Of a stretch of 64,000 bases of DNA, positions 27,830 through 52,523 are shown in pieces. A model generated the notes under the pieces. That model was given only the letters and a program-made list of their open reading frames with translations. It was not told the DNA's origin and did no database searches. Within the stretch, counting starts at the first letter, position 1; every line of letters begins with the position of its first letter. Source of the stretch: Phallusia mammillata (Eukaryota); contig OZ281498.1 in NCBI GenBank assembly GCA_965637545.1, positions 4,340,001-4,404,000 of the forward strand, in the 5' to 3' direction. The translations under genes and the position numbers were made by a program.

Positions 27830-30800
27830 CTAGTAAAATGACCTGTCAAGTATGAGGTGAGAAGCTGAACCCGACTGTACACATTGACTCCTGTTGTTAA
27901 AGGGAAATGGATCACATTCATCACATGTTCCTGGATAGGCGTCGCCTGATCTTACTGATACGTTGGCGTTCAAATCTGACCCTATAATAAAATAACTGAT
28001 GCAAAATGTCCAAAACAATTTCAATGTATGTTACATTAATAAATAAAGGTATATACAACTCACCTTTTGGCAAAATCCGAACGGTAGTCATCATTCCAAA
28101 ATCTTCGTGGATCAAAATGTGGCAATGTATAACAACATCTCCAATAAACTTGTTGGTCATGAATCGAATCTAAAAATAGCAGCTTTGGTTAAAGCCTAAA
28201 TGTATATGAATGTCCCAAATCACGAGTGTGTAACTTGTGACCAACTAAAGAATGCAGTGCAAGCGCGCGATGTCAAAATCTAATTTGTTTCAAATCAAGG
28301 GAATTTTAGTTTCGTTTTCAAAGGTTATAGTTTTCTGCAACCTAACATTGCGGCTAGAATCACTTTCGAATTATATCAGATGTTAATTTATTATATGCAA
28401 GTTTGGTACGCAATGAGGTAAAGTCAACATGTGTTATACAAAGGTACGGTCCGAGTTCATATCATGGTGGCTGTGTTTGACTCGTTATTGGTAACGTTGT
28501 ACAGCTCTGCCCTAAAACTTGTTTACTGTGATGTTGGACAACGGTGGCACCAGGATGACGTCACGGAAAACTCCAGGCTGCGAGAGACCAATGGTTTCAG
28601 GTCCACCGTTTCCATCCTTCCAGCGCTTTTCATGGCCGAGATACCTGAGCGGATCTTTTGGTATTTGGACGTCGGCGGATTCTATTGTGCAAGAAAGCAA
28701 AAAAGCGATTGTATAGCAAAGTGAATCAATCATTAAACAAGTAAAGAATATACCGTTGTAGCCTCCAAATTGATAGAAGCAAGGTTCCATCTTCTGATTC
28801 CAGTACTTCATGCTGTTGCTATCGAATGGACCGGTATAAGCGTTGTAACTAATAACCTGTACATTAATGTTGGAAGATTATGAGTGATATAGTTGTGAGT
28901 TTCAAGGTTTGCAAATTTTATTATGGGATATTTTACTTGAAAGCTGTTGACGTGAATATGAATTGGGTGGCTTTCAACTGTTCCTGTGTTGGTAAGATAC
29001 CATTCCTGGACTGTGTCAACTTCCACATTATACCTAAAACAAACAACAGTTTTGAAACAAGAGAACATTTAGCCCTGTGAGGGGATACACATATGTGTCA
29101 AGTATATAGTTTTTTAAGTTACCTCAAATTTATCTTTTGTGTGTTTAATCAATTATGTTGAATTACATGTACATAGTGTGTTATGCAAACATTTAAATAT
29201 CCTTTAGCTCGTTTACAAATATCCATTTCATTTTTTAGTGAAACAAACTACTGATTATAACCTCCAGAATTCTTCGTTTTTAAAATACTCTCTGTTCAGT
29301 GTGATTCCTCCACCAGCTTCGAGTACAAAACGACCATGGACTTGATCTTGAGTTAAATTTCGAAAATCTGACACATACTCGGGTCGTTTAGGAAGCTCGC
29401 TGGGAATGGTAGTTTTTGTTTCTGGCCCAGTTGCTACGATTGTAAGAAGGGTTCCGTTATATCTAGAAATCTTCGCTGTGGAAATCATCTCGAAATCTGG
29501 GGCGTAAGACTTTAACTGAAAAAACATAAGCTGGTCATCATTATGAAACCTGAAGGTGTTTTTCTGTAAAACAAACTCACATAGTAGGTCCCGGGTTTGT
29601 TGCAGACAATCAACCAGTCTATTCTTGAAGCAGGAACAACGAAGCTTTTTCCAAATCGTGGACGAGTTGGATTGTCCAGATAAACTCCATCGACAGCGAT
29701 CTCATAGAAATCACAAGCCGAGTTGTTATGCTCATCCGCCACAAACAACTCTAAAACTTGTCTTGCTCCTGCATTAACCATCCTATGATAAAAGCAACCG
29801 AAGTTTTGTTGGAGATATCGTTAATGACAGATGATTTCAATTTTACCTAAACCGTTTTACTTGTCCTGTAATGATGTTTAAGACAGGATTCAACTGTCCG
29901 TTTGTAGTAAAATTTTCCACACCATTTTTAGTATTATTGATCCAATCCAGAAGAGTTTTGTTACCTGCTCCTTTAATTCTGGTCCTATTGAGTCTGTAAA
30001 ATGGGATTGCGCCTATCACTTTAGATCAAAAGTACTCGAAAATATTCATAAATTCCATGAAAAAATGGATCAGGTGTAAATATACGTAAACTTGTTGTTT
30101 GAGCTGTTGCAGTTGTAGATGAGCTTGTTAAAAAAACTAATATTATTCTTAACGCCATTGCTTTACACCCAACTGTATTCAGAATGTAAGTGGGCCTAGA
30201 AATCAGTAATTTAGCAAAGTTTGTCATTAACAAACCGTCCCGCGTTCGGCGTATTAGTGTATCACCTATCACCTATATACAAGGTTGCCATCGACATGGA
30301 CCCAACATGCCCGGTTCTCAGCCAAACATGCGGTTCGTCCGTTTAAACTGTGGTTTAAAGTTTTATAAAATTAGAGTGATTTAAAAAATCAATTGTAGCT
30401 CTGTTGGAGCATTTTTCGTCATATCTGAGCTGCATTTTAAATAAAGCATTGCTTACGTGAAAAGTCGGTCGTGCATCGATTGTTGGGCAGATGCGAATCC
30501 ACGGCCAGTATAAAAGAGCAAGGATTGAAATATCAGCTGCACATCATGTTCGCATTTGCCTGGACACGATGCATCAAGTAAGTGCTGAGGTGTTGTAGAG
30601 TCAGTTGGATCCTCAACAATAATCATTCCCGACATTCCACTATTCGTCTGCACAAAGTAGATTTAGAGGCTTTTGTTAGGAAACTGACAATGCTAGAAAT
30701 GTTCTTAACTTTTTGAAAAATCCCACCTGAAAGTCTACTGATCCATGTAGATGAGGATGGTACCAATAGGTTCCTGCTGGATGATCAGAAACTATAGGAT

Positions 30801-32338
30801 AGTTGTAATGATACTGTCCATTTTCTGGTGTCACGTTCACAAAGACGTTGTCATGGGGGCGCTGTAAGTTATAGTATTTGTTTAAAACATTTAATTTATC
30901 TAATAAAGTATCTTACCAGTCCGCTGATGTGTAAGCCGTGCGTGTGGATGTTTGTATGATTCGGAAATTGCAAGTTGTTGTGTTTTGAAACGAAATCTGG
31001 TTTTTGTAGCTTGTTGGTCTGTTTAAAGAAACTGTTTTATAGATCTTTTGAGATGAACATAAATTCATAAGTGGGATCAGCCCTGAAGCGTCTATGCAGA
31101 TCTTTAATATGATTACCTATGTAGATATATAAAAAAGTCAAAAACTACATCAGCTCTGTTGGCTGCCTAATATTAAACAAACGCACTCATATGACTGTTT
31201 CTGTGGAGTAGGTTGTGCCTACTTTTTAATTGCACTCGTTTACACAAGGCCTTGGATGACATGACACCAATGTGGGTGTTTAACCTACGCAAAGTATGCG
31301 GAAATGATTTACTTACGCAATAGGAAGTTCCTAAATTAAAATTTTGGAAAACCACCACTTTTAAACTATATTGTTGTTGCATATTGGCATCGGAATATCT
31401 ATCTCATTTACTTTGTCCTACACCGCTTTAATCAGTGGTTCTTAACCTGTGAGCAAATTTTGTTATTGTAAATTTTATGGCGCGAATACCAATGTTAGGT
31501 TCACTACATCTCCTGCTTTAATACACCACGTCGGTCCTGGAAATTCCCCGTTGTAGCTTCGTCTGGAAAGTGTTAGCCAATCCACTGTGAACTCACCGAC
31601 TTGTACCGAAAGATTCAGTTGCAGAAACCCATTTGAAGAATGAATCTGTCGGGGCTGGACTAAAGGAAGTCCTCCTGCAAATAGAACCATAATCTTTGTA
31701 GTGCATATAAACTGAACAATAATATGCACATAAAAAGAAAAATCCCCGCTTGCGGAGGTAATAGCAATGGCTTTTCAGAGCCAACTAATCAAGTTTCATC
31801 ACTACGAAACCATTCCGTTGTGCCATATTTGAAAGTGAACAACGTCTAAGTTCGAGAAACTTTTTTCGGTCAAGAACTTTAAACCAGACGCATTTCCTGC
31901 TGTTTTTGTAAAGTTTACCCCTTAGAAGATTTTAAAGATAAAGGTCGCCCCCAAGCGTCTTTAACCTATTTACAATGCGCTCCCAACTGATTTTTACTCA
32001 CAAAATTTTCATTAAACCATGTCATATTAACCACCTGGAGGTCCGTTTACCTCTTTTTTAAGAACCTATATGTGTTTTTTTTGTTTTTACTTTTAGATGA
32101 TTTACTTTTAGATGACTATTTTGCTTTTAGATGATTACCCTCCAAAAAACACTACGTTGCCAGTCGCTCTGTCACAAGGTGCACTTTTTCAAAATTTTAA
32201 GCTCATGCATAGCCTAATACGCTTAAATGACTTACCCTTGAGCTTACATGGGGAAGTCTTACTGCATGTATCGGTTCCCGACACATTAGTTTGGAAGAGC
32301 GGAAAACAAATTACACAAAATGCAATAATGTATTTCAT
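27830..32338 (-). CDS. Secreted multicopper oxidase, copy 3, 13 exons
   Basis: ATG at 32338 (MKYIIAFCVICFPLFQTNVSGTDTCSKTSPCKLKG). Motifs TNIHTHGLH, GTYWYHPHLHGS, HPIHIHVNSFQ and IHCHILIHEDFGMM. Ends GTCDECDPFPFNNRSQC...RSFY*. Confidence 0.92.
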
Positions 32339-33614
32339 GTTTATTACATTCAAACTTAAAAAACGTATATCATCAAACCAAACGCTATTTTTAGTTTCTA
32401 ATTACATAATATCTATGAAAAACAATAGTCTCTACTTCCACTGTACAACTGACCACCTTTTGCAAGTAAAGTCGGTATTACAACGCTGATATAGCCATAC
32501 GTAGGGGTTGTTTGTGGTGTGGAAAATCCTATGAGCAACAAAGCATTGCAAAACATTGCCCACTATTGATGCAAACATTACTCATCTTTGGAGGTGGAAT
32601 GAGAAATGGCTGGGATTTCATTGTTGATTTACTCCTTCACTTTGAGGAAGTGCAAAGTAACAGCTATTTTTACAAACTAGCTGTTTTTGCATGAAACGTG
32701 TTTCAACATCGCTTTACTTGCCAAACTTTTGTTGCAGTAAACGCAAGAAGGCTAAAAGTTAATTTCTAAACATATTATCTAAAGTTTGTCACAGCGCACT
32801 GCTCCCCAACGTTAAAAACTTTTCTCGACACTATTGCACCATACATGCATTGTGACGTTAGATTTCCAAACCTTTGTCCTGTTTTTCATGGTTTCTTTCC
32901 TTTCTAAAGTGCAGTCTAACCGCAGTTGTTTTTAGTGTGTAATGGTAAGTTCATTTATGTACTACCCTACCAGTTAGATTGTTTTAACCCTGCACGTATT
33001 TTGCTGGTCTGTTTAAATTAAGTAGGCAAACTTTGTTCAAAATCCGGCTATCTTTCAAATCATTAACGGGCGCACATTGAACTGTTTGACTAAACAGAAG
33101 AATGGAAAGTTGATTGTACAGCGATTTTCAATAAAGGTATCTAGTTTTGTCTCGTTTTTTTGCTTGCTTGATTGTGCCTTCTATTTTGGTTCAATATTTT
33201 CTTGCTAAAGCTATGATGCATTATTTTATTGCTAAATCTATAAAGTAGTAATTGTTGATTGATTTCTTTACTCTTGATTGGTTCCTCTTAACTAACTAGT
33301 ATTAAGTCTGTAACCCTTATCGATACCAGTAAAAATCACAACATTTCAATCATACAAATACATTTTGATTTGAACTTATAAGCTCGTTTTTATGTACGCT
33401 AATTCAGTTGTATAAAATTGATATTATAGTATGTACACTTTAGATTTAGAATATCAATTAGGTCGTTAGTGATCCTAAAAATAACTTTATTTTGTAAAAT
33501 GCAGACTTGACTATCAAGACCATTGTCATGAGATAAGCAAAAAAACTACACTAGCGAAACGAAATATCTGTACTATAATTATATTTTGTTTCTGAAGAGT
33601 GCCCCCATCTCGTA

Positions 33615-36600
33615 TTAGTTGGGCCGGTTAGCCCCTCCAGGCGGTGTTGATTGCGGCGGCTGGTTTGTTTGGGTGTCTATGGGGTTGGGAATGGGTAGAG
33701 CCACCGGCTTTGGCCTTTGCTGCAGGTTAGCCAGTGTCAATGGCGTAGGTGCCGATGACACACACTGACTACCGTTGTTAGGCGGAAACGGATCGCAACG
33801 CTGACAAGTGCCAGGGTAGGCGTTTCCGGAAGTGACGTTGGCAGAGAGGACTTCACCTGAAGCAACAAACACAAACAGTCATGTCGGTTTCATGATTTGT
33901 TCACAAACAAAACACAAATCACAGCATACCATACCTTGGTTTACTATATCGGTCACCATCATCATTCCAGAGTCTTCGTGCCCTAGAATGTGACAATGGA
34001 TCGTGACGTCGCCGAGGTATTTGTTGGTCATAAAGCGAACCTGTCGAGATAAAAACAGTTCAAAACCTCAGTTCTGACATTCTAGTTGCAATATGACTCT
34101 TCTGCAGACCGTAATATTGGAAAGAGGTGGAACCAGTAGTGTGTCACGGTAGACCCCTGCGTTCGAATATCCAAGTGTTCCAGTACCACCTTGGGCCCAC
34201 CTCTTGTCATGTCCCAGATACTTTAGAGGGTCAGAAGGGATATTGACAATGTCGGAACCTGTTGGAATACAAAAACATGCATCAGATAGCCCGCAACGTC
34301 ATTAACCCACGATTATAACTTTCGTACTATTATATTCGGCATGTTGATAGTAGCAGGTATTATTTTGTTGATCCCAATATTTCCATTTATTTGTGGTTTT
34401 GTTTTGGCCATCGAAAGGTCCAGTGTATGGGTTGTAGCTAATCACCTAAAAACGGAGTTGTTAACTGGTTAAGCAAAAAACGCTACTGCGGCTTTAAGCT
34501 ACTTGTTACTTGGTTAGTTACTGGCAAAAATTCGTTCTTTGGACTTTTGGAGAACATAGCCCATGGAGACCATTGCTTTATTTCAATGACAAACCTGAAA
34601 ACTATTGACGTGAATATGGATAGGATGGCTGCTGGTGGTTCCAGTGTTGGTGAGATACCACTCCTGCAGTTTGTTTACCTCAACCTTGTACCTGCATCAG
34701 ACACGAATCGTCATGATGTAAAACAAACTGTCAAAAAGAAACCAACTATAAAATGGCTTAATACCTCCAGTACGTTCCGTTTGAAAACAGATCACGATTT
34801 AGAGTTTTTTGTGAGGAGGCTTCGATCATGAACCGTCCGTGTACTTCACTATCACTGGCGTTTCGGAAATCAGCCTGGTACCAAGGTCGTGCCGGCAATG
34901 TTGTATTGATTGAAGTGTTAGTGATTGATCCTGATACTGAAAGAGTTAGTAACGTCCCGTTGTAACGAGCTGCGTTGCCGATCGATGGATCATCGGAAGG
35001 TGAAGCCAAAGATGTAAGCTACAATGAAATGTCAGTTTTGGGTTTCATACCTGTTATGATAAAAACTAGTAAACTCACGTAAAATGTTCCCGGTTTGTTG
35101 CAAACAATCAACCAGTCGACCTTTGCTGCTGGGACTATGAAGCTTTTCCCAAGATGTGCGGGGGTTGCTTTGTCCATGTAAACGCCGTCCCAAGCGATTT
35201 CATACCACTCGCAGGCCGGATTTCCGTTTGCGTCGATAACAAACAGTTCAAGCGTAGGTCCGCCTCCAGCATTTACCAGTCTATACAGTCAAAAGGTGTT
35301 TTTTTACAACGAAACCCAGAGAAAAAATATGCGTCGTACCTGAAACGTTTGGTCTGTCCTGTTGGTAGATACAAAACTGGATTTAACCGGCCATTTGTAG
35401 TAAAGTTGTTCACACCGTTGTTGGGGTCGATCATCCAATCGTACAATGTCTCGTTAGTGCCGGTAACATTATAATTCTTTAACCTGATCAAAAACACACA
35501 ACATTTAACAGAATCAAGTTTTGTGTTAACCAAGGCCAAAGCGAACTTACATAAACAAGTTGTCTGCAATTTCGATCTGAAGTTTGGCGAATCCGCCTCC
35601 CGAGTAAAGCATCGTCGGTTGCATGATCAACTGTACATCATGCTCACAATGGTTCGGACAGGATACATCTTGCAAATGCTGTGGCGTGCTGGCGTTGGTT
35701 GGATCCTCGACAATAATCATCCCTCCCATTCCTCCATTAGTCTATAAGATTTTTCCTTATAGTATATTTGCCTAAACTAAACAATACACTAATACGAATG
35801 CAAAAAAGTTTTTTTGTGCACTGGTTTATGCAATGGGATATTTGCACCAAAAAAACTTTTCAACATAACCAGTACATAAACATATTTAGTGCAAAGTAAC
35901 AACTTATACCTGAAACTCGACTGATCCGTGCAAATGGGGATGGTACCAATATGTTCCTGACGGGTGTTCTGATTCCACTGGATAGTTATAGTCGAAATGC
36001 GAGTTGTTGGGGTAAATTTGAATGAACACATTGTCATGAGGTACCTATAACACCGTGTTCATTTTTTAAACAATTATCGAAAATTTAGATTCACACCATT
36101 TTTTACCTCTCCGCTTATATGCAGTCCGTGCGTGTGGATGTTAGTGCTATTCGGAAATCGTTTCCCGTTATTCGGTTCATCTTTTTCCGGGAATGTAAGA
36201 AGGTCAGTCTGTAAAAGACACAAGGCTTTTAATTGTCCTATTTTTTGACACTACATAAAATATATATTTAACCTACCAATGTTAAATTGACGGTGTCACC
36301 AGGCTTTACACGCCATGTTGGCCCTGGAATCATTTTATTGTAGCTACGTCTGTTCAATGTAAGCCAATCAACGGTGAACGGTGTCACTTCCAAATTAAAA
36401 TTGACTTTCAGAAATCCATTGGAAGAAACAAGATGTTCGGGTAGTGTTAAGTTAAGTCCGCCTGGAAAAGATTTAGATTTAGTGGTTCTTAAATTTTTCT
36501 GTATTTTTGCTAATACTTTCAGTATAAGTATTTTTCAAGAAGCTTACCTTTCAGCTTGCACGGCGACGTATAGTTGCATGCTTGTAGAGTAGGTGTGGCA

Positions 36601-36650: not shown

Positions 36651-38195
36651 TTGTGTTAGAATTATTGCTTAGCCGGAAAAAAAATTGCCAAGCAAAACAA
36701 TGTTTGCCCAAATTATCCTATTCCACAATTCGTTAAAACTGTGTTCTGTCGGATTTTTAGGCAAGTAAACTTCGAATATGTGTCCCGGTATATATAGTTT
36801 TTGAGTTGGTAAGATGTATTGTTAATCTGTCAAACGCACCTCAACCAAACTATTTCCTGCATAATTTTACAGTCCACTAATGACAAGTTAGCATGTCCGG
36901 TTCCGCTGCTTGCGAGGTATAAGTCATCATGAATTAAGAAGCTGTGTTAATGCACATTAATAACCACAAGTGTCCCTATCTCATTAGTCCTAACTGTGTG
37001 CATTTTCGAAGAAGTCGGAAAAACTAAAATATTGCAACAAGGGCTTAGCGGACTGATTAAATAAGTGCGCTTGGGCACAGACTATAGGAGGGCTAATTGT
37101 GCTTTGTGGCCTAAGCGGTCGTGCAATTTTAGACGTTATCCCCTTTAGGCTATGTTTTTTACTATTGAGATCCAAACCAATGGCACCTCCCTCCTCGGGG
37201 TTCCATCCAGGACCAGGAGGCTCTCGGGAACGAATCCCGGTCAAGCTGGACCATTGGGCCAAATTTCTTCCATGACGTGCCCGTTCTTTTGTTTTTAAAA
37301 ATCACATAATTTACGCTTTTTATGTATGGTGTTGGGGTGCAATATATTCATATTGAGCGAAAGTAGGCATAAATTACCTTTTTAAGTTGTAAGTTTTCAT
37401 TTTGTCGAAAAATGATCTGCATAGCAAAAAGTATGATGTCTATGTGGAAAAAACTGCCTATCAGAAGCACCCATGCGTTACGATTGCAGATTTGCTCTGT
37501 ATATCTTTCCTATTTGTATTTTTTTGTATTAATTTTAAAACCGGGCATGAAAAATAATTAGCACTGAAAGAAGCAGAATTTAGGTGTTTGAGAAATTCCT
37601 TACTGATTGTAACTGCATAGCATTTAACTTTTTTTAACCGCAAAGTATTTTCATGGTCTTAGATTAGACCAGGGGTGGGGAACCTTTTTGTTTATAAAGG
37701 CCACCAAACGGTTTGTTGACACTCGTTTAGGCCGCATAGACTATTTCCCAGGCCAAGGACAGTGGTGTTCAATCTTTTTGACTTACAGAATGGTCGTTTG
37801 CTATTCCCTCGTAACTTGCGGTCTAAGCTGCAACAGGGGTTGTGACTTTTTCATGACACTTGTCACTGTTAGTGACAGGCGTCAATGACAGGGCTGGGGT
37901 GTCACTAAATCAGTGACAGGGCGTCACTAAATCAGTGACAGGGCGCCATTAAATCAGTGACAGGGCAAAATCAGTGACAGGGCAAAATCAGTGACAGGGG
38001 GTTCTTGCGTTCTTGCGATAGTATGAACACAAGCGAATTTATTAGGTCTTTGCTTGTAAGGGTTTTCTTTAAAAATTGCAAGCAGCAAAGGTTTTAAATG
38101 TAAATTTCGTGCAAAAATGTACCTCATGACTTTAATTTTTTGGTATAATCTTTAAATTCTGCAAGCAGCAAAGGTAAGTGTGTTTTTGAACATTT

Positions 38196-38254
38196 TTGAA
38201 CTTTCATTGCCTGCCAGGCAGTCTGATGAGCTCTAACAGGGCGAAAAAGTTCAA
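38196..38254 (+). ncRNA. Type III hammerhead ribozyme
   Basis: TTGAACTTT-C-ATTGCC-TGCCA-GGCAGT-CTGATGA-GCTC-TAACA-GGGC-GAA-AAAGTTCAA. This gives a perfect 9-bp stem III, a UUC cleavage triplet (cut after 38205), a 6-bp stem I, an intact CUGAUGA/GAAA core and a 4-bp stem II closed by G-C. Confidence 0.9.
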
Positions 38255-39354
38255 TCAATTTGTTTTAAGTAGTTTTTTTTTATTATGTAAACATGTCTAA
38301 CCTCTGTTTTGTGCCACATTGTCATATCTGAATATTTAACAATATGTAATGTTATGTGCAAAAAGAGGAGTTTATCTGAGTTTCCAAACAAAAAAACGTT
38401 TTGTACACATGAAGATCAACACGTTTAAAGCTGCGTAAAAAAATAGTGCATCTAGAATTTCCTAGCTTCAGGACAATGTTACGCGTGGTAATGTCTTTTT
38501 ACCCATTTAAACTGATTCTGCCATATTTACACAAAAAATTGTTGATGTTTTTTGTTTTATTTTTTTTGCAGACAGCCACAAACATTTAACGATTGGAAAC
38601 CCAAGATTTAAAGATAACCAAGATTAACACAAGTATTTGGTTGTTGTTATTGGTGTTTGAGGTGTTGTATTTAATTGCACCTTTGAATTGTGTGCACATA
38701 TTTGTAATTGTCAATGTCTACTTGGAAATTTAAGTTTATACATTATATAACCAGAGATTTAAAAAAATACTGTGTTTAGACAAAATAAAGAAAAAAACAA
38801 CTGCAAATGAATCACCATGTTTCGAGTTTGTTAAAAGGGGTTAAATGGCTAAAAAACAAAAATAAGTTTAATATGGTTCATTATTTTAAAGTTATTTTGT
38901 GGCCAACTTAGCCAATTATATTCACTCTGTGCGATAAATTTCTAAGTGTGTTTAAATTGGTATGGATGTTTTATGTGTTTGTTAGGTTAGGAATTCCATA
39001 GGTTCTGTAATTTAAATAGCTTGTTACCTGGTAAACAATCAAATTCATTGAGTTCGCAAATTTCATTTGGCCACATGGGCAGGAAGAGTCCAGAAGCTTT
39101 GATGAAAGCTGACCAGAAGCAGAACTGCTCTACTGATCTTTCACATGTATGTGTTCGAGCAATCAATAATTGTAGTTCTGTAGTGAATAATGTATTACTG
39201 ATTCAATAATTCTTGTGTATAACAGTATTTTACTTTAAAATCTCTTATTTGTTGAAATATTTTCAAGTCCGAGTCAGAAAATGCTCTTTTTGTTCATTCT
39301 ACAAAAACGTTTTTATTACACACAGTGATTTGTTACCAAATGTGTTATTTCAGG

Positions 39355-41150
39355 ATGGTGTATCAGCAAGCAAGTCAATATCTTACAAGATGCACATGTT
39401 TTAGACTCTCCACAGAGTATGAGGTGTGTTGAAGGTTTAAATGGTTCAGTAAATTTAAAGTCCATTTTTCAATGGTTTTACTAGCTCTGCTGTAAAATAT
39501 TGTCATGTGATGAGTTTTATCAAAATCCTAAATTTAACTATAAGCATGCACTAATGAGTTGTGCAATTTTTGTTTTAGTTAAGCATTTGCAATTGCAAGC
39601 ACATACTGCGCATGACTATTGGTGAACGTCATTCAGTTGTCAACCCACAAAGATGGCTCTGCAACACTTGCCTTACAACTGAGTCTGTTTGGACATGTCT
39701 AAGCTGCCCTAATGTTGCTTGTGGAAGGTAGGAACCATGGTCAAAACACAAAACAAAATGTTCTACAGTCTATAAAAATGAATAAATAATGTGTGGACTG
39801 TTTTGGATGGCCATTTGAGTATTAATAAAATGGTATATAACCTACAGATATATCCATGAACATGCATTAAACCATTATTTGGAATCTGGTCATCCATTAG
39901 TGATTGATGTCAATGAACTCTATGTATATTGCTATGCTTGTGAAGAATATGTTCTCAATGACAACAAATCGGGGGACATCAAGGTGCTACGTGAAACTTT
40001 ACAGGTAGGCAAATTTGGGTTATTATCTTTTTTAAATTGTAGTTGTGTCAGTCCAAACAATTCTGTGGCATGGTTTCTTGGTCGGAAATTGCCTGGAAAA
40101 TAATTTATGTTGTATCATGTGACAAAAAGTATTAGCTCATAAATTCTGTTTGTAAAATTTCAATAATATTAAGTTAAACAATTTAGGCTGCTTTTGTGCA
40201 GTAGGTAAAATTTGAACAGTTTATGTATTGTGTGCCATAGTAAATATTAAAACTTCAATCAGAAATTCTTAACATTTCTCCAGGCAATTAGATACCAAAA
40301 CTTTACTGGCACAACTCGTAGTGGACACACACTGAGGACAGCCACAATAAGTGCAGATGAAGATGTTCAAATGAGGAGAAGATTACAGCAGCAACAACTT
40401 GATAGAGATGATAGACTTTTCACTGCCATTTGGCATTCAAGGTACTTTTTCACACAGTAAAAGTGCACAAAATTGTGTTACTCCAAAAATTCGATGCCCA
40501 AATTTGCCAATTTTCATAAGATTACATAATTTTAATTTTTTTTGTCTTTACTATGTAGGTTTGTTCGACAAAGAAAAACCTTCAGAAACTGGCGGAACTA
40601 TGTTTGTAACAAGGACCAACACTGTCAGAGTGATGACGAACTACCATGTGCTACAGTCCCACTACAGTGAAACACAGAACTACAAGAAGACTTCATTGGA
40701 AAACTCGATGACCACCTTGAAACCTTGTCAGAATTAAAGATCTGCAACAAGTTAATGCTGATTTTCCATTAAACACAGAAAGGAAGGGGATTGATACAAG
40801 GTTAATAAGGGAAATTACACTTGATCCTGTTTAAGGTGTTTTACCAGCATTATCTGTTGTGTGGCAGTGCAAGGTCTGATTATGTGGAAAAAATCAATAC
40901 TGGTGTCTTATTTCAGTAAAACACCATCTCCAGACTGTTCTGTATTTACTCTATCCAAATTGAATACCACATTTCGTTTTTTTAGGTGCTCGGTCATTTG
41001 CAAAAGTTCCGCCGATGTTTACTTGCCGTTCGTGACATCGAAATGGATGAAACCACTGGGTGCTACGAAGATCCACAAGTTTCGCCATCAAGCAAGTTAC
41101 GAGTCGCTGGAAGAAGGTCCACCATAGAAATAAGAGCCATGGCATTTTAG
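39355..41150 (+). pseudogene. USP44: Captured, intron-containing 5' fragment of USP44/USP49 deubiquitinase (ZnF-UBP domain; catalytic domain truncated)
   Basis: Exons ~39584-39728, 39848-40004, 40284-40441, 40559-.. and 40987-41150 give [125 protein letters not shown] and VLGHLQKFRRCLL. There is an in-frame TGA at 40668-40670, no intact GLxNLGNTCY Cys box, and a stop at 41148-41150. The start codon is tentative. Confidence 0.85.
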
Positions 41151-41915
41151 CAGGCTAGTCTTTTGCCAGAAACAATTTATTCGAGCAACTGCTTGTATAC
41201 AGAAAATACTTACATCTCATGACAACTCAGGTTTACTTGTAGTAGGGATTTGACTTGAGGACTCAAGTCTAAATCAATGACATTTCTTAGAAATAAGGAA
41301 AATAAAGTTTTTAAAGACCTTGCCTTTCAAAATAAGGTCAAGTCTTCGAAATAAGAATAGGATGGCGACCCTGAGTATAAGATATGCAATATAATTAAGG
41401 CAAGTTTAAATCGTTTTATGTAAACAAGGCACTAAACTTTACCAGTTTTAGTTCAATTCCACACAGACTATTAAGATTTTACTTATAGCCTCACTCATGT
41501 TGGTAGTGTACCTCACACTGTGCTTCACGGACAAAGCGCCTCATGGCGATATTCCTGACATATAACTTCTCAATATGGCTGTAGACTAGCCTGCTAAAAT
41601 GCCATGGCTCTTATAAATGCAAAGCTTTGTTTCATTTGGTATGAAAATGTATTGGTAAGACCATTAAATATTTTCTAGTCTTGGCAATGTCCTGTTTGCT
41701 TATAAATTGTGATGTTATGGATGTGTGTATTGGTTTATTCTATTTGTTGTTTTCTTAACTGAAGTCTGTCCACACCAGATGGTAGATATGGTCATGTAAA
41801 TGTGCCATAACAGCTCCAGTATTTAACCCACTGGCAGCCCAAGTTATAAACCTTTCTTATAATCCGACACACTCCGGGCTGGTTGCTTTGGCAGTTTTGA
41901 CAGCCTGAAACAATG

Positions 41916-42196
41916 GGTGGTACTAAATACTGCATGTTACCGTATGTTATTCTGCTTAAAATACTGCATGGTATGTGAAATGCGAGAATACAAGCCCCAA
42001 CAAGGGAAAATTAGACCAGATTATAGTATTGTTTTAATTACAAACCTTCACCCAACCAGAATAGCTCTAACCGTTAGCGCTTTCAAAAGTTCGCAAAACT
42101 TTATTTTCGTAAAAGCATATTCAAGTCCTTTACAACTTCCTGCCGTGTTATAACATGCGGTATACCATGCGGTCACATGCGGTATTTAGTACCACC
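41916..42196. mobile_element. Small MITE
   Basis: TIRs GGTGGTACTAAATACTGCATG / CATGCGGTATTTAGTACCACC. A related half copy lies near 44425-44455. Confidence 0.65.
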
Positions 42197-42699
42197 GGAA
42201 ACAATCGCCTATCAGCGTTACAATTTAAAAGTGTTGATTGGGTGATTGTGGTTTGATTTTTTATTATTTTGCACGTAGCATCCCCCCTAAGATGGGTATT
42301 TTTTTTTGAATTTTAAGTGTCAATTGCATTGTCACAGGAGAGTATTAATCTATATACTGAAAGCTAGAGAATATCGTGTGCTTGCTTAGCTTTTTAAGTT
42401 CTTTATCACACCTTGCCTTCACTTTAAGCATTCATAAATTCGTTGTTTTTTGTTCAGTAATAAAAGCTGTCTGAAATAGTTTGTCATGCTTTAGAATTAC
42501 TGTAAAAGTTTTTGTACCAACACCAATATTTTTGGAAAACTCAAAACAAAAGCTAGTTAAAACAAACAAAAGAGTCAAAGTCAATGCTGTAGTCCGGGGA
42601 CCCCTGGGGCAATTTCTCCCATCTATCTTGATTCTTTGCTAGTCTGTTGTATTCCATGATCTATTTTCCTGTCCACCCCTGAACATTGCCAAAGCCTGT

Positions 42700-43390
42700 T
42701 CGTTCTGGGCCTGCCTTGTGTTCTTATTCCCTCGCCGGTCCTGTGCATGATGGTGTGTGTAAGAGTTCTATGGCGACATGTTACATGGCTAACCCATTAA
42801 AGCTACGTTAAACAAGATTGGCGACAGTATGCACTCTTGAAATACTCCAAAGTCTTAAACTATTTTAGTGCACTTCCATTGGTTAACACAGCATTGATGA
42901 CCTTTATATTATACAGTGATTTGATCAGGAGGATCAGGAAGAGACTGATACCATGTTTCTTCATGGTGCTCCAAAGGGCCTCTGTGACCAAGTTCTTGAT
43001 GGTGGTCTCTTTTTTTCACCTAGTATTCAATCTGTTAGACCAGTGGTTCTCAAGACTGTAGACTGTACCATCATGTTCTTCCCTTGTTTGTTCTTCAGAT
43101 AAGACACTCTTGATTTGAGGTATTAGTTTACCTTTCTTGGTATCATGACTATCAAAGATTGTGTCCACGTGGGCCACACTTATCTCATATGTATTCAAGA
43201 TCTCCTGTGTTATCCAGCAAGGCTGCTTTCTGGTTCCAGCCTTTTCCAAAGTTTTCATCACAGTCGCATTCATGATTTTAGAGAACTCAGATGTTAATTC
43301 TTCAACATTATTTTCCAACAGTGCATCAAATCTGCTTTCAATCTTTATTTCAAACCCCTTTCTGCAACCTGGCTCTTCAAACGACAAAGG
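42700..43390 (-). mobile_element. Degenerate RTE-like LINE fragment
   Basis: Minus-strand remnants ESRFDALLENNVEELTSEF..KQPCWITQEILN and EALWSTMKKHGI..LIKSLY..CILSPILFNV (RT domain), with stops and frameshifts. Confidence 0.6.
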
Positions 43391-44852
43391 AAAAATACTC
43401 TTTTTTTTTCAAAAAATATAAATCAGTGACAGGGCGTCAGTGAATCAGTGACAGGGTGTCAGTAAATCTGTGACAGGGTGTCAAAATCAGTGACAGGGCG
43501 TCAGTGAATCAGTGACAGGGCGTCAGTGAATCAGTGACAGGGTGTCAATAAATCTGTGACAGGGTGTCAGTAAATTTGTGACCTACCGACAGGGTGTCAG
43601 TAAATCTGTGACAGGGTGTTATTGACAGGCGATAGGTGACAGCCTGTCACTGAATTGTCACAACCCCGCCTCCCAAGCTGAATACAATTCCTCTGGCTTG
43701 TTTGCAAATATCGATGATCTAAGGCCAGCTTGTGACATCAAAGACGTGTTTAAGACATTCGATTATGCGCTAACAATTGTTCTATTGCAAGACAAGTAAG
43801 ATTGTAGAACCTACGGAAATCGCTTCGTGCACCACAACGGGACCATTTGGCCGCAGCCCTAGAACTAATCCAATAGTAATGTGGAATTAATGTCAAAAAA
43901 TACGTTTCTGTATATTTTTCAGCGCCTGGTGCAGTTTGTAATATCAACATCGTAATATTTATTCTGACGTCGAAGGCAGCACGTAGTGCCTCAAAGGCCG
44001 CATGCGGCCTTTAGGCCGCAGGTTCCCCACCCCTGAATTAGACTAACTTCAAATAATGGCAGACCAACATGTTTTTATGTTTATTCTATTCTAAAGAAAA
44101 GTGATTTTCCTAAAAACAAACAGCATCCTCCAAAAAATGTATCCAAGAATTTTTATAACTGAGAAGTATGTTAAACTAAAGAATCCAGCAACCAATAATA
44201 TTTTTACAATCCAAATACCATTGTCATTTCATTCTTAAATTTTTTGGCTAAAAATTTGAATGAAGTCAAATATAATTTGGGCTGTAAAATATGCAATCTA
44301 CTAATAAAACTAATGAAGATGTTGATGGGTAGGGCTTTCAGGGTCAGGTGAGGGTGAGTAATTACAGTAACATTAAATATCAATTTTAGATACTCTTCTG
44401 AGCCTAATATTTGTACAAGTTTTAACATGCGAAACCATATGGTGTTTAGTACCACTAGGGGGTATATATATATATGAGATTTAATTGTAGTGTTTTTTTA
44501 CAAACCCCGTACCAGACCCTAAAAGCCCTAACCATTCTTTTAGTTGGGCCGAAAATATTTTCTGACAACTATTTTCTTAACTAAGTTTGTTACATAAAGC
44601 TACTTAGTTGCCCCTGAAGCTAAAGCTTTACATTTACAAAATGACCTTATTGCCATTGAAGATGTAAGTTTCAGTAGGAGCTGCAATGTGATGCATTCTG
44701 TTAAGTTTGTGTCTTTCTGTTTTATGTTAAACATTGGCTATATATAGATGGTGATTGGCATCAGTGATTTTATTACTTATGGTACTATATGATTTTTTTT
44801 GTTTTCTAGCTGTGGACTACTATACAGTTGAAAAAAGCTTTGGTATAAAGCT

Positions 44853-47800
44853 ATGTTTTCACGATGGAGAAAAACTGGTTGTGTTTTGTGGAATACAAGA
44901 GGAAGACTTCAATGGACTTCTTCCACTGCAAAACTGTACAGTTCAAAACCTGCTAAAGCACCAGCTGAACACAAGCAGATTCGAAAGCTGTTAATTGCCA
45001 ATCGAGGCGAAATTGCATGTCGGGTTATGAGAACTGCAAAAAAGTAAACTAGCATTTCTTCTACCAAGTCATTTTTAAAACTTAGTATATATAATTTTTA
45101 GTAATGGGACGATACCAGATTTCAAAGCGAGTACCGAGAGTACGAGTACCACGTAAAAATACCTAGTACCGAGTACGATTACTGAGTTCTTAAGTATAGT
45201 GTTGTATATCACTGGCTAAATTATCTGCCATGGCCGGGATACTGGCGACCACAAACACATGCAGAAAAATATAATCTCCACATGATAGCGAATTTTTTTT
45301 TTAAACTGGCGGATCTTTTTCCCGATGTTGTGTTTCCGAAGCAATAATTGGCATAAAGTTGCCCATATTCTTATAGTGTATAGCTGCCTTTTGTATCGAA
45401 CATTGGAATCGAAAACTGAGACAAAGTATTTCGATACCAACGTGCGAGTACAAGTATCGATACCACTAAAATCGTTCGGTACCGGGTACCCGTCCCATCA
45501 CTAAGAATCTTACTTAATTATTCAATGCAGAATGGGAATCCAGACTGTAGCTGTCTATAGTGAAGTGGATAAAAACCAGCTGCATGTAAACATGGCTGAT
45601 GAAGCATTCCATATTGGTCCTGCATCATCACAGTTAAGCTATCTAAAAATGGATAAAATTCTTCAGGTAAACACCTAGTTATGTTGTATGTTTGGTGGTT
45701 GGTACATGTATTTTATTCAACTAGGTTGCCAAAGCATCAGGATCTCAAGCTGTTCACCCAGGATATGGCTTTCTGTCAGAAAACACTGAGTTTGCTGAAC
45801 TCTGCAAGGATGAAGGGATAATTTTTGTGGGACCCCCATCTTCAGCTATTCGGGACATGGGTATCAAGAGCACCTCAAAATTAATTATGTCAAAGGCAAA
45901 TGTACCTATTATAGAAGGTATAGCATTTCAAACTGTTGCAAACTCAAAAGTGAACTTAACCTTCTATTTACATTTCTATGAAACAAATTGTAGGTTACCA
46001 TGGGGAGAATCAGTCAGACAAACATCTGTTGCAAGAAGCACGTAAAATTGGATTTCCAATTATGATCAAGGCTGTAAGAGGAGGTGGTGGTAAAGGAATG
46101 AGGATCTCTCATACAGAGGAGGAATTCATTGATCAATTAAATGCCGCCAAAAGAGAAGCAATGGCATCCTTTGGTGATGAAGTAATGTTGATTGAAAAGT
46201 ATGTAGATAGACCGCGCCATGTAGAAGTTCAGGTAATAATACTGATAAGTGAACTATGAGTTTAGGGGAGGAATTTCATAAAAAAATGTAAAACTGTAAA
46301 CTGTTGGATCCGGTTCACATTTGAAACCGATTGTAAAAGATTCTGAAATGGACATCCCTAATTATAAGGTCTATTTCAAATTGCTATAATTTTTTATGTT
46401 ATATTTGTTTTTCGTCTTATGGGGAGGAATGAATAGTTCGAAAATGGGCAAAGGGAGGAATGTAACAAAAAGGGTTGGGAATCACTGCTTTAGAACATTT
46501 TTTTAATTAAACATTCTTAAATTGTTTATGCAAGTGTGGTGAAAAGCATCAAAATTTGAGTGTTTTTTATCTTTTTGGGATGTGACTGTTTTGATTCAAC
46601 AGGCTAATACAAATATTGTGAATTTGATATAAATGACCTATAAATTTTGCCTACATTATGAAAGTCTAATTTATGTTACATTATCTATAGATATTTGGTG
46701 ATCAACATGGAAATGCTGTTCACTTGTTTGAGAGAGACTGCAGTGTACAAAGACGGCATCAGAAAATTATTGAGGAATCCCCTGCCCCGGGTATTACACA
46801 AGAAACTCGAGCACAACTTGGTGAAGCTGCAGTTCGTGCTGCAAAGGCTGTTGGATATGTGGGGGCTGGAACAGTGGAGTTTGTTATGGATCAAAACCAA
46901 AAGTTTTACTTTATGGAAATGAACACAAGATTACAGGTGAATCTTATGAGTTGGTAAATGAAGGTAAAGACTGACTTTAACTAGTGGCAGTTTAACTTTT
47001 TTCTGATGTGAACAAAAGTAAATGAAATCATTTGTACAGGTGGAACATCCGGTTTCTGAAATGGTAACAAACACAGACCTTGTTGAGTGGCAGTTATTAG
47101 TGGCACAAGGTGAAAAGATTCCATGCACACAGGTATGCAAAAATGGTGCTTTTGTCAAATTTAAAAGTTTTTTAATTAAATGCTTAATTACCTAATGCTT
47201 GTTGCTATTTTATCAACAAGAAAAACATACACATTTGAATATAGGTACAGCTGAGCATAGTCATGAACTAGACATTCAATTGTAAGAGAGTGTAATAATA
47301 CGTTTATCTGAGAAAGATTTATTAATAGAGAGTAAAAGCTTGCACAAATAAAACTACTGGCTGTGGAAGTAAATGTGTCATGCCTTGGGTGGAAAAAGTA
47401 TGTTAAATTGAACATTTGTATGTTTTAGAAAAATTTGAGTGAACACTTCCTTTGTGGGATCAACACACGTGCTAAGGAAGCTATAATCAATTAGTTTTAA
47501 AGATCACTTAAAACCTTAATTTATCATGCTTCGTCTGATTTGTTTTAAACTATGGCCAAACGACTGTTTAACCACCCATGTCATTTTGCATAGGATTGAT
47601 AACTTTGTTCTATTAATGGTCGTATACCTTGCTGTCATAGACAAATTGACGCCAAGGTTTTAGGTTGCTCTTCTAAGTTTTTTAAATGATTGACAATTTC
47701 CGAAATGTCATTTGCATTTTAAACAACTTCTTTCCGTTACAGCGCAATTTTGAAACCTGTAAATCAATTTAATATTTAGGTCAGTGAAAAAGCCAAACGA

Positions 47801-48962
47801 TCTACGTTTTGATCGCCATTTTTCTACGTAAAACAAATTAGAATCACACCAAAAAGTGATAAACAGTTCATCGCATATACATAAAAATGTTTTTTCGCAG
47901 GATGAAATCCCACTTAATGGGCACGCATTCGAAGCCAGGATATACGCAGAAAATCCAGACAACGAATTTATGCCGGGAGCTGGACCCCTAGTTCATCTCT
48001 CAGCCCCCGCTCAGGACCCAACAATCCGGGTCGAAACCGGGGTGCGGCAGGGCGATGAAGTTTCGCCCTACTACGACCCCATGATTGCGAAACTCGTAGT
48101 CTGGGGCCCTGACCGAGAACGCGCGCTTAAAAAGTTAAACTACCAACTCGGCGAGTACGCAGTCGTTGGGCCTGATTCAAATATTTCTTTTTTGCGTCGT
48201 TTATCCGCTAATCAGAGCTTCGTTAGTGGCGACGTTCATACAGGTTTCATTCCTCAGCACTACGAAGACCTCTTCCCGTCGCAAACAACTGCTGTCGACC
48301 ACGCTGACGCATGTAGGACCGCTCTTGCGCACCACCTGCTTGGGGCATCGGACATGCCCCCGTCACGTGACCCGTTTGTGTCCTGCTCGGCTTTTCAAAT
48401 GAACCTGGTTAGCGAGAGTACGTTAAATTTAAAGTTCGACGGGAAAGATGTAAAAGTAAGTGTGAAAGAAATCGAAAGAGGAAACTACACGATGTCTGTA
48501 GACGGTGGCGAATCTCACAGCGTTACCGGTAAGTTAGAGGCCAACGCCAACGGTGTTAACTACGTTGTCGGCACTGTGGACGGCGTCACTAAACGGGTGA
48601 AAGTCGTTCGTGTGAATCAACGCTCTGGAACGGAAGCCGATTGTCTGCACATGTTTCCCACAGACGGCCAGGAAGCGGTGAAAGTGGAAATTCTTCTTCC
48701 AGCATACCTCACCGACGCTGACTCAAGTTCTGGCGTTGGCCAACCAATAGCCCCACTTACAGGTACGATCCAAAAGGTACTGGTCGCTCCCGGTGACTCA
48801 GTAGGTGAGGGGCAACCCCTGGTGGTCATGCTCGCAATGAAAATGGAACACACCATACGAGCGCCGCGCGGTGGCGTAGTTGAGTCGGTTATGTGCTCGG
48901 ATGGTGATACTGTCAAAATGAAGGCACTACTGGTGAAACTCAACGACAGTGAAGCGACCTAA
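44853..48962 (+). CDS. MCCC1: Methylcrotonoyl-CoA carboxylase alpha (biotin-containing) subunit, mitochondrial; 7 exons
   Basis: Exons 44853-45043, 45531-45666, 45725-45918, 45994-46232, 46691-46936, 47040-47132 and 47901-48962. There is a basic mitochondrial-type leader. Biotin carboxylase motifs are [66 protein letters not shown] and [11 protein letters not shown]. The biotinyl motif is LAMKMEH. Confidence 0.93.
45099..45503. mobile_element. hAT-like MITE in MCCC1 intron 1
   Basis: TIRs TAGTAATGGGACG / CGTCCCATCACTA, internal GAGTAC(C) repeats, degenerate 8-bp TSD (ATAATTTT / AGAATCTT). Confidence 0.7.
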
Positions 48963-51729
48963 GTGTATATGATATATTTAAGTTAGGGTATGGGTTATAG
49001 TGTTTGTTGCACCATATGTGTTCAAGTAACCCCAAGACTATAGATTCAACCATTAACGTTGACATGCATGTAAACTTGATGTTGATGAATGACATGTATG
49101 GTTCAAATTTTAAGTTCAAAAAACTATCAAGAACATGCATGCATATTTTCTAGAGTTCCATCTGTTGCCTATACACTGTACACCTGTTAGATACAAACCA
49201 GAGGCCGTATCATTTTTGCCTATGTAGAACGGCAAAGACTTGGAATTAAAAAAGACCTTTCTCGTTTTGTGTATGGGTTTGGTATGTGGCAATTGAACGT
49301 AACTATTCTTACATTGACCTTCTATTTGCAAAATAAGTCCTAAACCCCTATCCCTCAAATGCGCATTTATCGATCGTGACTTTGTTTTCGCTTTGTTCTG
49401 TAGTGTTTTGTTGGATCTTTATTACTACTTTGCTTTGCTGTTGTCTGTGTGATCAATTAGTAATTTCGATTCCTCTTTGTCCTATGACACTTGGCATTTG
49501 TTGTTTACCCGCCTTACATCGATCAACGGCACGAGGCAAACCGCTTGTTTTGCTCCTAGCCGTCAGAATAAATTATTTATGGAGCTACTTCGCAGTAAGT
49601 CCAGTCGTTATGCGATAACCTGTCAACTTAATCAGGACCTTTTCCATTATCGCCGACATATCTTCCTCAATTGATCTCGGATCACTGCTTTCAAGAGCGA
49701 AAACAGGGAAGCAAAACACGTGTGCATGAGACTGCTGCTGTTTACATATCACCCTAGCAAAAACAATTCACACATATATGCCACACAAATTGAAAACTTT
49801 GACAAGTCTAAAGTCATTCACCTTTTATATAGCATACTCGTATATATATATTGCCTAATAGATGGGGATCATCCGCATCTTATTCAAATAAAATTTACTA
49901 TGCAAGTTTCCAAACAATTCAATTTTATTTTGTTTACAGCGCCCGTAAATATTCGTAATAATTTACAGTAAACAGAACAAGAAAAGCGTTGCAAACAAAA
50001 AAGGATCAGCTTGAACCACACGTGGTTATAACTTATAGCTGACCCTAACTATTTGAAATAAGATGTCGTATCGGCAATTAAAGTAAGTAATTATGAAGCG
50101 CTGTGAAAATAAATCAACCACAAGATGAAAAGGAAACGACACCCGATCCGTCTGGAAGTCCCCGATTAAAATCGGCTGTGTTACGCAGAATAATGCGTTT
50201 CTTATCGGGCGGGATTAGAATCTTTAGAACCTGTGTTATAACACAGCCCGATTGCGGACGGTTTTATCGGTAATGGCAGTGGAGCATTAAATTTGTTTTT
50301 TATTGGCAAATATTATTTTTGCTGTGATAATAATCGCAGGTAAATTGGGTTTTATATCAAAATGGCAGTTAATTGTAAAACAGCAAGACAAAAACAAATG
50401 CATTCAAAGCTGTGAAATGAATATGTTAAACACTAAAATGAGCCAAGAATCAAGATTGAAGTACCTGATTGGCATCAAGGTTCTGGCAATGAAGCAATGC
50501 AAAGAGACCTTTCAGTGAGAAGAATTTCAAGTTATTACCTTTGTATGAAGCAAAGTGAGGACCAGCACACTGTCATATGAGGGCTTGTAGATTGGATTTG
50601 AATTGAAATGATTTACAGTAAGTGGCTGCCTTGTTACTGCCTTTCTAAACTCAACTCTTTCTGTATTTCTGGCTGATGTTATTTTGAATTTTAGCACAGT
50701 TAAAAACCCCAATATTGAATATTAACTCTGTTTTATAACACTTAGACTGCTTATTGGTGACTAAACTCAAGCCTCTTTTGTTTAACCCATAATTGTCAAG
50801 TCAAATGAGCATACACTTTAACTTTATTTTTTTATTGCAGTTCACCATCCGGGAAAAATGCTTAAAGCTTGAAAAAATCAACAGAAACATTCCATATCAA
50901 AAAAATTGAAGAAACTCTTTCATTGCGGAAGAATTTTGTCGACAAAAACAGCTCTCTCTTAAAGTGTCAGCAAAATCATTGATGTATACGACCTGTTACT
51001 TGCCTCACAGGAGAAAATTGTGTGTCGAGATATGCACCACATACTTTAGTTTTACATGAATCAAATCGGAATATGTGTTATTTCTTTTCCACTGTTCTAC
51101 CTGCCTGCAAGTTTATTTATTAGTTCTTATACCCAAATTAAGAATTTGTATTCAAACATTTGTAGGCGTTGATATTATTTTACCTCCATGGTGATTATGG
51201 TCTCATGTAAATTCTGAGAATGTTTTGCACTCTGATGTAGAATCGGACAGTGAAGTGATTCATCAGACATAAATTGAGAACCTCTAGTTTTGACCAGTAG
51301 TCTGCATGATAGCATGTTGTAACAATTGGGTGGTTCAACCTCATCTTTCACATGATATCCGGTTTAATTTTCTTGATAATTCAGCAAATCATTACATTTT
51401 CAGCTGTACAATATTGTTTCACCTTTTTGTTTTATTTTAGTCTGTTTACTTAAAGATCCTTGTTTAGTATGTACTATGTACTTGTAAATGCAGGTTTTAA
51501 CTGGCCAATCAACCAATTGCTGTGAATGTAATTATTTGTTCTCTTCCCATTTATTTCTGCTTCATATAACTATGGGACTCAACTTGAAAATGTTGAAGTG
51601 TGGAAATTGGGTTCATAAGGTGCTTTTTCCATCAATAAAGTGTTGTCCTCACTGTGCATTTGGTGTTTCATCATTTTCATTAGTACAGGCTTTAACGTGT
51701 TTGAGACCACTAACGGCTTGAGGTATATG

Positions 51730-52523
51730 TAAACGGTTTTTACACGCCAACTCTAAACAACATTCAGCAAACGCTTGCAAAATATCGTTTAAATCTGATC
51801 ATAACCTCGTAAATGAGAGACGTGCATCATAAGCGAACGCAGGGCATGACCGCTTTAAAAATGATTTTTGCGCGGTCTACCCATATAGCATGTACAGGCT
51901 CCAGATTTTAAACGGTTTAAAGTTATTATCACATTTAAACGATGTTTTGTATGCGTTTACTAGCTGTATTTTGGAGTTGACCTGTGAAAACCGTTTGGGT
52001 TTATCTTAAACCGTTTAAAATCTGGAGCTTGTATAGGCTAGATTGGTCGACTGCCCAAAAATCATTTTTGAAGCGGTCATGCCCTGCGTTCGCTTATGAT
52101 GCACGCCTCTCATTTACGAGGTTATGATCAGATTAAAACGACATTTTGTATGCCTTTACCGGATGTATTTTAGAGTTGACCTGTGAAAACCGTTTGTGTT
52201 TATCTTTAACCGTTTAACATCTGGAGCTTGTATATCATTGGTTGACTGCGCAAAAATCATATTTAAAGCGGTCACGCCCTGCATTCGCTTATGATGCACG
52301 CCTCTCATTTACGAGGTTATGATCAGATTTAAACGATATTTTGTATGCCTGTACTGGATGTATTTTAGAATTGACCCGTGAAAACCGTTTGTGTCTATCT
52401 TAAACCGTTTGTCATCTGGAGCTTTTATAGGCTACATAATTCGACAGCGCAAAAATCATTTTTAAAGCGGTCATGCCCTGCGTTCGCTTATGATGCACGT
52501 CTCTCATTTACGAGGTTATGATC
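51730..52523. repeat. ~197-bp internal repeats (one inverted, about three direct) in the foldback spacer
   Basis: CGGTCA(T/C)GCCCTGC recurs at about 52074, 52270 and 52468. An inverted copy lies at about 51730-51925. The array runs into the gap. Confidence 0.85.

Follow-up and report, generated by a model that had tools for sequence, protein, structure and literature searches.

A type III hammerhead ribozyme motif in the backbone of a cut-and-paste DNA transposon family of Phallusia mammillata

Background

Hammerhead ribozymes in animal genomes are mostly of type I and are found in retroelements, satellites or conserved introns (PMC6155905). Type III is the form of plants and viroids, with a few atypical insect examples (PMC7936874) and a discontinuous motif in mammalian Clec2 genes (PMC6155905), and from a tunicate genome only type I hammerheads have been reported (PMC8704543). 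A compact type III motif at positions 38196-38254, + strand, of a stretch of the Phallusia mammillata genome raises the question of what such a ribozyme is doing there. The stretch, hereafter the window, comprises 64,000 nt of contig OZ281498.1 (positions 4,340,001 to 4,404,000), and coordinates without a prefix refer to it. A first-pass annotation had described the motif as a single-copy hammerhead just behind a splice donor, inside a transposon carrying a captured fragment of a USP44/49 gene, and had proposed that it was either an intronic ribozyme of the parental gene or one acting on the element's own transcript. We asked whether the motif is a credible ribozyme, what carries it, where it came from and what it may do.

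Results and discussion

Architecture and predicted fold

Read from the sequence and from its full-length alignment to Rfam RF00008, the motif is delimited by stem III, in which 38196-38204 (TTGAACTTT) pairs with 38246-38254 (AAAGTTCAA) over 9 bp, all perfect. The cleavage triplet UUC occupies 38203-38205, with C38205 as C17 and a predicted cut between 38205 and 38206. It is followed by stem I (38206-38211 with 38217-38222; 6 bp, one G-U; loop UGCCA), the core segment CUGAUGA (38223-38229), stem II (38230-38233 with 38239-38242; 4 bp, one G-U; loop UAACA) and the GAA of the core (38243-38245). The A15.1-U16.1 pair is present as A38246 with U38204 in both the sequence and the RF00008 alignment, and UUC directly 5' of helix I conforms to the N-U-H triplet rule, being less common than GUC. 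All conserved core positions (C3-A9 and G12-A14) and all 19 pairs were found in the 59-mer, so the complete core and three helices described earlier are confirmed base for base. Helices I (6 bp) and II (4 bp) are capped by loops and helix III (9 bp) is open to the flanks, as in the type III topology, and all helix pairs are standard in each of the four distinct hammerhead sequences aligned. Most type III hammerheads likewise have a helix I of 6 bp and a helix II of 4 bp (PMC7936874). Loop 1 opens with U38212 and loop 2 closes with A38238, the bases for a predicted loop-loop contact; pairing of the first U of loop 1 with the last A of loop 2 was proposed by Dufour et al. for most natural hammerheads (PMC2632901).

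The Rfam Hammerhead_3 model (RF00008) aligned to the motif from end to end, with a score of 36 bits that falls short of the gathering score of 48.5 bits. At gathering thresholds no hammerhead match was obtained over the 64-kb window, and the motif surfaces only at E-value thresholds; when the window was compared with all 4227 Rfam families, RF00008 gave E = 4.7e-4 for 38196-38254. A genome-wide RF00008 run, in which 68 of about 36,600 candidates were scored and the hammerhead family was missed, was used for E-value calibration alone, and extrapolation from 27 bits (E 0.139) gives about 4e-4 chance matches at 36 bits per 240-Mb genome. The isolated 59-mer prefers a fold of -17.5 kcal/mol over strict hammerhead pairing at -15.4 kcal/mol, its minimum-free-energy fold being a non-hammerhead one with a z-score of -1.7, and in contexts of 151 and 251 nt a hammerhead-compatible fold lies at most 0.2 kcal/mol above the minimum free energy. 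The sub-threshold score and the fold of the isolated 59-mer, with its small z-score, would suit a chance match, that is, an AT-rich repeat that came to spell the hammerhead consensus and was then amplified. This origin is nevertheless very improbable because only about 4e-4 such matches are expected per genome; it would also have to account for a full set of core positions and pairs and for the conservation of the motif relative to its flanks across the four contexts described below. Judged by core, helices and chance expectation, the 59-nt motif has the sequence required of a type III hammerhead ribozyme, and the original call is upheld in this sense. A scan of public metagenomes with the core and stem II as query gave no match.

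Another hammerhead-like motif was noticed on the minus strand at 20813-20923, where CTGATGA...GAAAC is directly followed by GTC. It has the layout of a minimal type I hammerhead with a loop-less stem III, a form seen in Penelope-like elements; Rfam reported nothing at 20813-20923 even with E up to 5.

The carrier transposon

The hammerhead lies in the left arm of an element that extends from 37831 to 43672 on the + strand and whose boundaries are common to more than 20 copies. Its left terminus reads CAACAGGGGTTGTGAC, and the 16-nt terminal repeat is perfectly inverted in copy L039 and imperfectly so in the window copy. Reading of the flanks gave the 8-bp target-site duplication ctaagctg on the left (37823-37830) and ccaagctg on the right (43673-43680), a match of 7/8; such duplications were found in 12 copies and are perfect in the other 11. 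Terminal inverted repeats with 8-bp duplications are the marks of a cut-and-paste transposon of the hAT or Zisupton/KDZ type, and the element has both. Inside its ends lie matching arrays of 22-nt subterminal repeats, one on the left at 37856-38002 (unit AAATCAGTGACAGGGCGTCAGT, identified by repeat search and by Tandem Repeats Finder on a related copy) and one on the right at 43391-43619. The window element contains no long open frame and no transposase, and by these sequence features the carrier is a non-autonomous cut-and-paste DNA transposon belonging to a young, multi-copy family. The shared boundaries, the target duplications and the captured USP44/49-like piece agree with the earlier placement of the hammerhead inside a cargo-carrying transposon. 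A backbone module at 38089-38640 (+ strand), delimited by BLAST and MAFFT, is common to a 6.3-kb and a 4.25-kb family of elements; no transposase coding remnant was seen in the 4.25-kb family between the left end and the module.

A duplication of 8 bp is usual for hAT elements and is also the Zisupton length (PMC12730594), and the evidence on the superfamily is split. On the side of Zisupton/KDZ stands locus L058 (C2:5619700-5626000), where an element at 164-5700 has the identical 16-nt terminus and a + strand run of open frames that encodes, among others, a CxC4 cysteine cluster typical of KDZ (Zisupton-type) transposases (PF18717, E = 5e-8) and a C2H2 zinc finger. On the side of hAT, a match to the dimerisation domain of this superfamily, within an open frame of 607 aa, precedes two context (iv) hammerhead copies by 966 nt on the same strand (copies at C3:15931569 and C3:16002366; hAT open frame at C3:15930603-15930821). 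The hammerhead-carrier family may be Zisupton-like rather than hAT. Look-alikes of one L058 open frame in the Protein Atlas were set aside, as they gave only weak RNase H-like leads (score 0.85), and exact-protein look-ups found neither of two element ORFs on record. No hammerhead was found when the initial 6 kb of the related KDZ-type element were searched.

Exact left termini also occur at C1:15394870 and C1:15407784, 7.3 kb upstream of hAT dimerisation-domain matches at C1:15387366 and C1:15400144, respectively, on the same strand. These two loci are a possible autonomous partner, and no hammerhead match is listed at either.

Miniature relatives of 91-366 bp consist of little beyond the two ends (L055, 135-435; L056, 117-207; L059, 222-588). 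The flanks were read for L055 and L056, and both show perfect 8-bp target duplications. The hammerhead is absent from all three; the ribozyme is therefore not needed in cis for DNA transposition.

Two further observations concern the surroundings of the element. A foldback element at 50133-54048 of the window is also inserted in another copy of the hammerhead transposon (L038, 5632-7367, matching 50140-54042 of the window), which indicates that it was recently active. The transposon itself lies between putative host open frames, at 28800-36200 on the minus strand upstream and at 45800-48960 on the plus strand downstream. From their translations these look like tandem multicopper-oxidase-like copies (HPIHIH) and a biotin-dependent carboxylase (GGGGKGM, AMKM); with genes so oriented, the element would sit between divergently oriented genes.

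Copy number and tandem arrays

The motif had been thought to be single-copy, which does not hold, since the 240-Mb genome has about 100 copies. A 151-nt query against the animal's own genome gave at least 40 scored matches among 102 candidates, a covariance model built from three variants gave 103 matches, and a search with the 59-mer allowing up to three mismatches listed 90 copies, including 34 with an identical sequence.

Between them, C3:19.56-19.65 Mb and contig C40 hold at least 36 of the copies in arrays whose 3.72-kb units follow one another head to tail. This macrosatellite (C3:19559000-19652000 and contig C40; loci L041 and L042) has one hammerhead per unit in uniform orientation. 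Hammerhead satellites yield unit-length RNAs, and the like-oriented repeats would be compatible with a retrozyme- or satellite-like system in which array transcripts are cut once per unit into monomers that are perhaps circularised. Such a reading would apply to the 3.72-kb arrays and not to the window copy, and we regard it as quite improbable. Within each unit, a relative of the element that is truncated at its 5' end is joined to about 330 nt of unrelated DNA, and a fragment of a LINE reverse transcriptase is also present; the joining of a truncated element to unrelated DNA points to segmental amplification. The window copy and the other dispersed copies alike contain just one hammerhead and are marked by terminal inverted repeats and 8-bp duplications; no second hammerhead was found near the right end of the element, as a retrozyme layout would have it, and Rfam at E-value thresholds finds one motif in the window. 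A retrozyme would have two hammerheads in direct LTR-like repeats and a retroelement-type insertion, and the element shows neither these repeats nor such an insertion.

Relation to the captured USP44/49-like piece

The element carries a fragment of a host USP44/49-like gene at 38665-41131 (+ strand; 83% identity to locus L046), comprising the upstream region and the first exons. The zf-UBP domain in these exons is decayed; its second half lies in the open frame 39879-40103 and its first half about 200 nt upstream. The intact parental gene is located at C4:23.0 Mb (L046), with exons running through the UCH signature. The hammerhead is indeed sense to this fragment, as noted previously, and the donor-like motif ahead of it would fit an intronic ribozyme inherited from the parental gene. 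The homology between element and parent is, however, restricted to 38665-41131, so that 410 nt separate the hammerhead from the captured piece; the coding sequence of the fragment starts some 1.4 kb downstream of the motif. No hammerhead was found in the parental locus, covering the intact gene and 3.7 kb upstream, either with our own model or with Rfam. The hammerhead module is also present in the 4.25-kb family and in the tandem arrays, both of which lack USP sequence. Because the homology stops at 38665, the parent lacks the motif and USP-free families carry the module, origin from a USP44/49 intron is refuted for this genome, and we give it practically no credence. Comparison across the genome and with the parental locus thus places the motif in dispersed repeats and leaves the ribozyme call itself unaffected.

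In most of the USP-carrying family the captured intron holds about 490 bp (L036, 3057-3550, corresponding to about 39866 in the window) that are missing from the window copy and from the parent. As both lack this segment, the small subfamily of the window copy (4-5 copies) keeps the older state.

Conservation between diverged contexts

Four sequence contexts of the hammerhead were compared. Context (i) is the USP-carrying family of about 23 copies, mostly about 6.3 kb long with the window copy at 5.8 kb, and context (ii) comprises the 4.25-kb family and the tandem arrays. Context (iii), with about 23 copies (for example at C2:7192368 and C7:9589282) and different flanks, and context (iv), with about 10 copies and yet another 5' flank, were each compared over the 59-mer and 19 bases on each side. 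The 59-mer is 95-100% identical across these diverged contexts, whereas identity in the flanks is lower, dropping to 47% immediately 3' of the motif. Between (i) and (ii), identity is 0.87-0.97 over 38157-38245 as against 0.57-0.87 elsewhere in the aligned module, and 2-3 sites differ in the 59-mer; were the divergence 25%, a 59-nt stretch would show at most two mismatches with a probability of 9e-6, and with one of 2e-4 were it 20%. The 59-mer of context (iii) equals that of context (i), with a different 5' spacer and matches at 9 of the 19 bases 3' of it. The boundaries of conservation coincide with the ends of stem III, and the donor motif together with the hammerhead forms the best-conserved part of the module at 38089-38640.

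Identity within a family was considered as a sign of selection and rejected because the copies are too young (about 0.6% from consensus, with 3.7% of 59-nt windows equally invariant) and because the invariant run, 38193-38364 with a break only at 38273, extends past the motif.

The substitutions shared by whole subfamilies are largely compatible with the fold. The change 1.5 C to U turns a G-C into a G-U pair, 15.2 A to G turns a U-A into a U-G pair, and 2.2 G to A and 11.3 G to A each turn a U-G into a U-A pair; N7 U to C affects a free core position and another change affects one unpaired base in loop 1, while 15.8 A to U disrupts stem III at its eighth pair. Of these seven changes, six are thus fold-compatible (P = 0.024 given their transition/transversion make-up). 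Among substitutions confined to single copies, 6 of 15 are compatible, against 6.4 expected under neutrality, and they include G5A, G12A and C3U/A9G. The contrast between shared and private substitutions is borderline (Fisher test, P = 0.059). No two-sided compensatory changes were found among the four aligned sequences, which show three one-sided wobble changes, one per helix, and context (iv) adds two further one-sided changes in helices. The overall pattern fits, at the level of sequence, a ribozyme that matters in the lineages founding families and decays freely after insertion. It is possible that the four contexts share the 59-mer by recent sequence exchange and not by descent, which would remove the argument from constraint.

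These data also bear on whether the hammerhead might be a hitch-hiking relic, which possibly cleaves but has no role, having been picked up once by a DNA-collecting family and copied along ever since. The element does hold captured host and LINE fragments, its miniature relatives move without the ribozyme, the youth of the copies deprives their identity of meaning, and covariation of the compensatory kind did not appear in the alignment. On the other hand, a relic would not be expected to be far better conserved than its flanks between diverged contexts, with boundaries at the ends of stem III, nor to retain its fold through subfamily-wide substitutions when private ones do not. We consider a relic the less probable outcome, though one with a real chance of being correct.

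A splice-donor motif next to the hammerhead

Upstream of the hammerhead, at 38160-38179 on the + strand, an exon-like motif TGCAAGCAGCAAAG is followed by the 5' splice-site hexamer GTAAGT (38174-38179). The AAAG/GTAAGT donor motif noted in the first-pass annotation, with GT at 38174, 22 nt ahead of the hammerhead, is confirmed and is also present in other copies. Both TGCAAGCAGCAAAG and GTAAGTGTG are invariant between contexts (i) and (ii) while the neighbouring sequence diverges, and GGTAAGT is also found upstream of the hammerhead in context (iii). The donor motif is thus kept in three contexts, 6-17 nt upstream of the hammerhead, despite differing spacers, which measure 6 nt in the main family of context (i), 16 nt in the window's subfamily, 16-17 nt in (ii) and 12-13 nt in (iii). 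The longer spacer of the window's subfamily is due to a 10-nt duplication, TTTTTGAACA, at 38183-38192 (+ strand), which the copy alignment shows to be private to this small subfamily. Candidate 3' splice sites on the same strand, recognized by sequence only, are a polypyrimidine tract followed by CAG at 38569-38571, of which the AG is kept in family (ii), and a nearer AG at 38268-38269.

Three other features of this region were examined and dismissed. An extension of stem III by pairing of GTAAGTG with the 3' flank amounts to a 6-bp match in context (ii) only, is lost in (i) and was regarded as coincidence; a TATA-like box at 38144 is not conserved among other copies; and the likeness of ATTCTGCAAGCAGCAAAG to a 16-nt tunicate spliced leader is too weak, since only the ends agree.

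Proposed action

The reading that we favour, and hold to be likely, is that the hammerhead belongs to the backbone of a DNA transposon family and cleaves the element's own + strand transcript in cis, in line with the second proposal of the first-pass annotation. Judged by its sequence, the motif is probably a working ribozyme of that transcript; + strand transcription, cleavage, use of the donor and an effect on expression are steps that we infer. The + strand transcript would fold into three helices around the core and cut itself after C38205, leaving a 2',3'-cyclic phosphate on the upstream RNA piece and a downstream piece that starts with AUUGCC and a 5'-OH. Since the hammerhead follows the consensus donor motif by only 6-17 nt, cleavage would most likely leave the donor and the short exon before it on one RNA piece and the remaining transcript on another. 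Splicing and self-destruction would then compete, and expression of whatever is encoded downstream might be dampened or re-routed. As miniature elements transpose without the ribozyme, any benefit of self-cleavage must concern the RNA, probably that of the autonomous element.

More speculatively, the exon, donor, 6-17 nt spacer and hammerhead could together constitute a splice-or-cut switch of the DNA transposon, an idea that we rate as improbable. If U1 and the spliceosome engaged the donor first, the ribozyme would be removed within the intron; if the donor were not engaged, the transcript would be cut 22-32 nt into the intron and destroyed. Spliced-leader trans-splicing is used by the host organism, and in an alternative form of the switch the cut would free a downstream acceptor from its cis donor to receive a spliced leader. 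Such a switch would provide the first case of a cut-and-paste DNA transposon with a functionally integrated ribozyme, and also the first of a natural hammerhead being coupled to a splice site.

Comparison with known hammerheads

Type III hammerheads of plant viroids, satellites and retrozymes (RF00008) have the same topology, core, 6-bp helix I, 4-bp helix II and U/A loop ends as the motif described here. They differ in having loops of 6-8 and 4 nt, compared with 5 and 5 nt here, and usually GUC with GAAAC in place of UUC with GAAAA; the Phallusia motif furthermore resides in an animal genome, with one ribozyme per element and inverted termini rather than LTR-like direct repeats. In most hammerheads, GUC goes with GAAAC/U (PMC7936874). 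Among metazoans, type III precedents are rare and atypical, being known from insect genomes and HDV-like circular RNAs (PMC7936874), and these have extended helices I and II and a loop-loop pseudoknot, whereas the helices here are short and plant-like and the loops lack Watson-Crick complementarity.

The intronic hammerheads of amniotes (HH9 in RECK, and HH10), for which a role in mRNA biogenesis has been proposed (PMC6155905), resemble the present motif in sense orientation and intron-like placement. They are, however, of type I and single-copy at orthologous host introns, in contrast to a transposon-borne type III motif of about 100 copies that is missing from the parental locus. The discontinuous type III motif in the 3' UTR of mammalian Clec2 genes is likewise associated with animal mRNA, and its cleavage is considered to reduce or redirect expression (PMC6155905); its helix I spans 150-1500 nt within a host 3' UTR, while the Phallusia motif is compact (59 nt) and mobile.

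A mobile-element setting is shared with the hammerheads of Penelope-like elements, SINE-like elements and animal retrozymes, a class to which the type I motif at 20813-20923 of the window can be compared. Those hammerheads are of type I and reside in retroelements that move through RNA, often in a minimal form that is active as a dimer. The carrier described here has inverted termini and 8-bp target duplications and moves as DNA. A full-text search of the literature found no description of a hammerhead in a cut-and-paste DNA transposon.

Conclusions

The hammerhead itself is ordinary; its carrier and its linkage to a splice donor are unusual. A compact, plant-like type III motif is conserved relative to its flanks in DNA transposons of a chordate relative. 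If active, it would offer a simple system in which to study what use a self-cleaving RNA is to an element whose movement involves no RNA stage, and the competition between cleavage and splicing. If it is only a passenger, it would still be a useful marker of how these elements are assembled from captured pieces.
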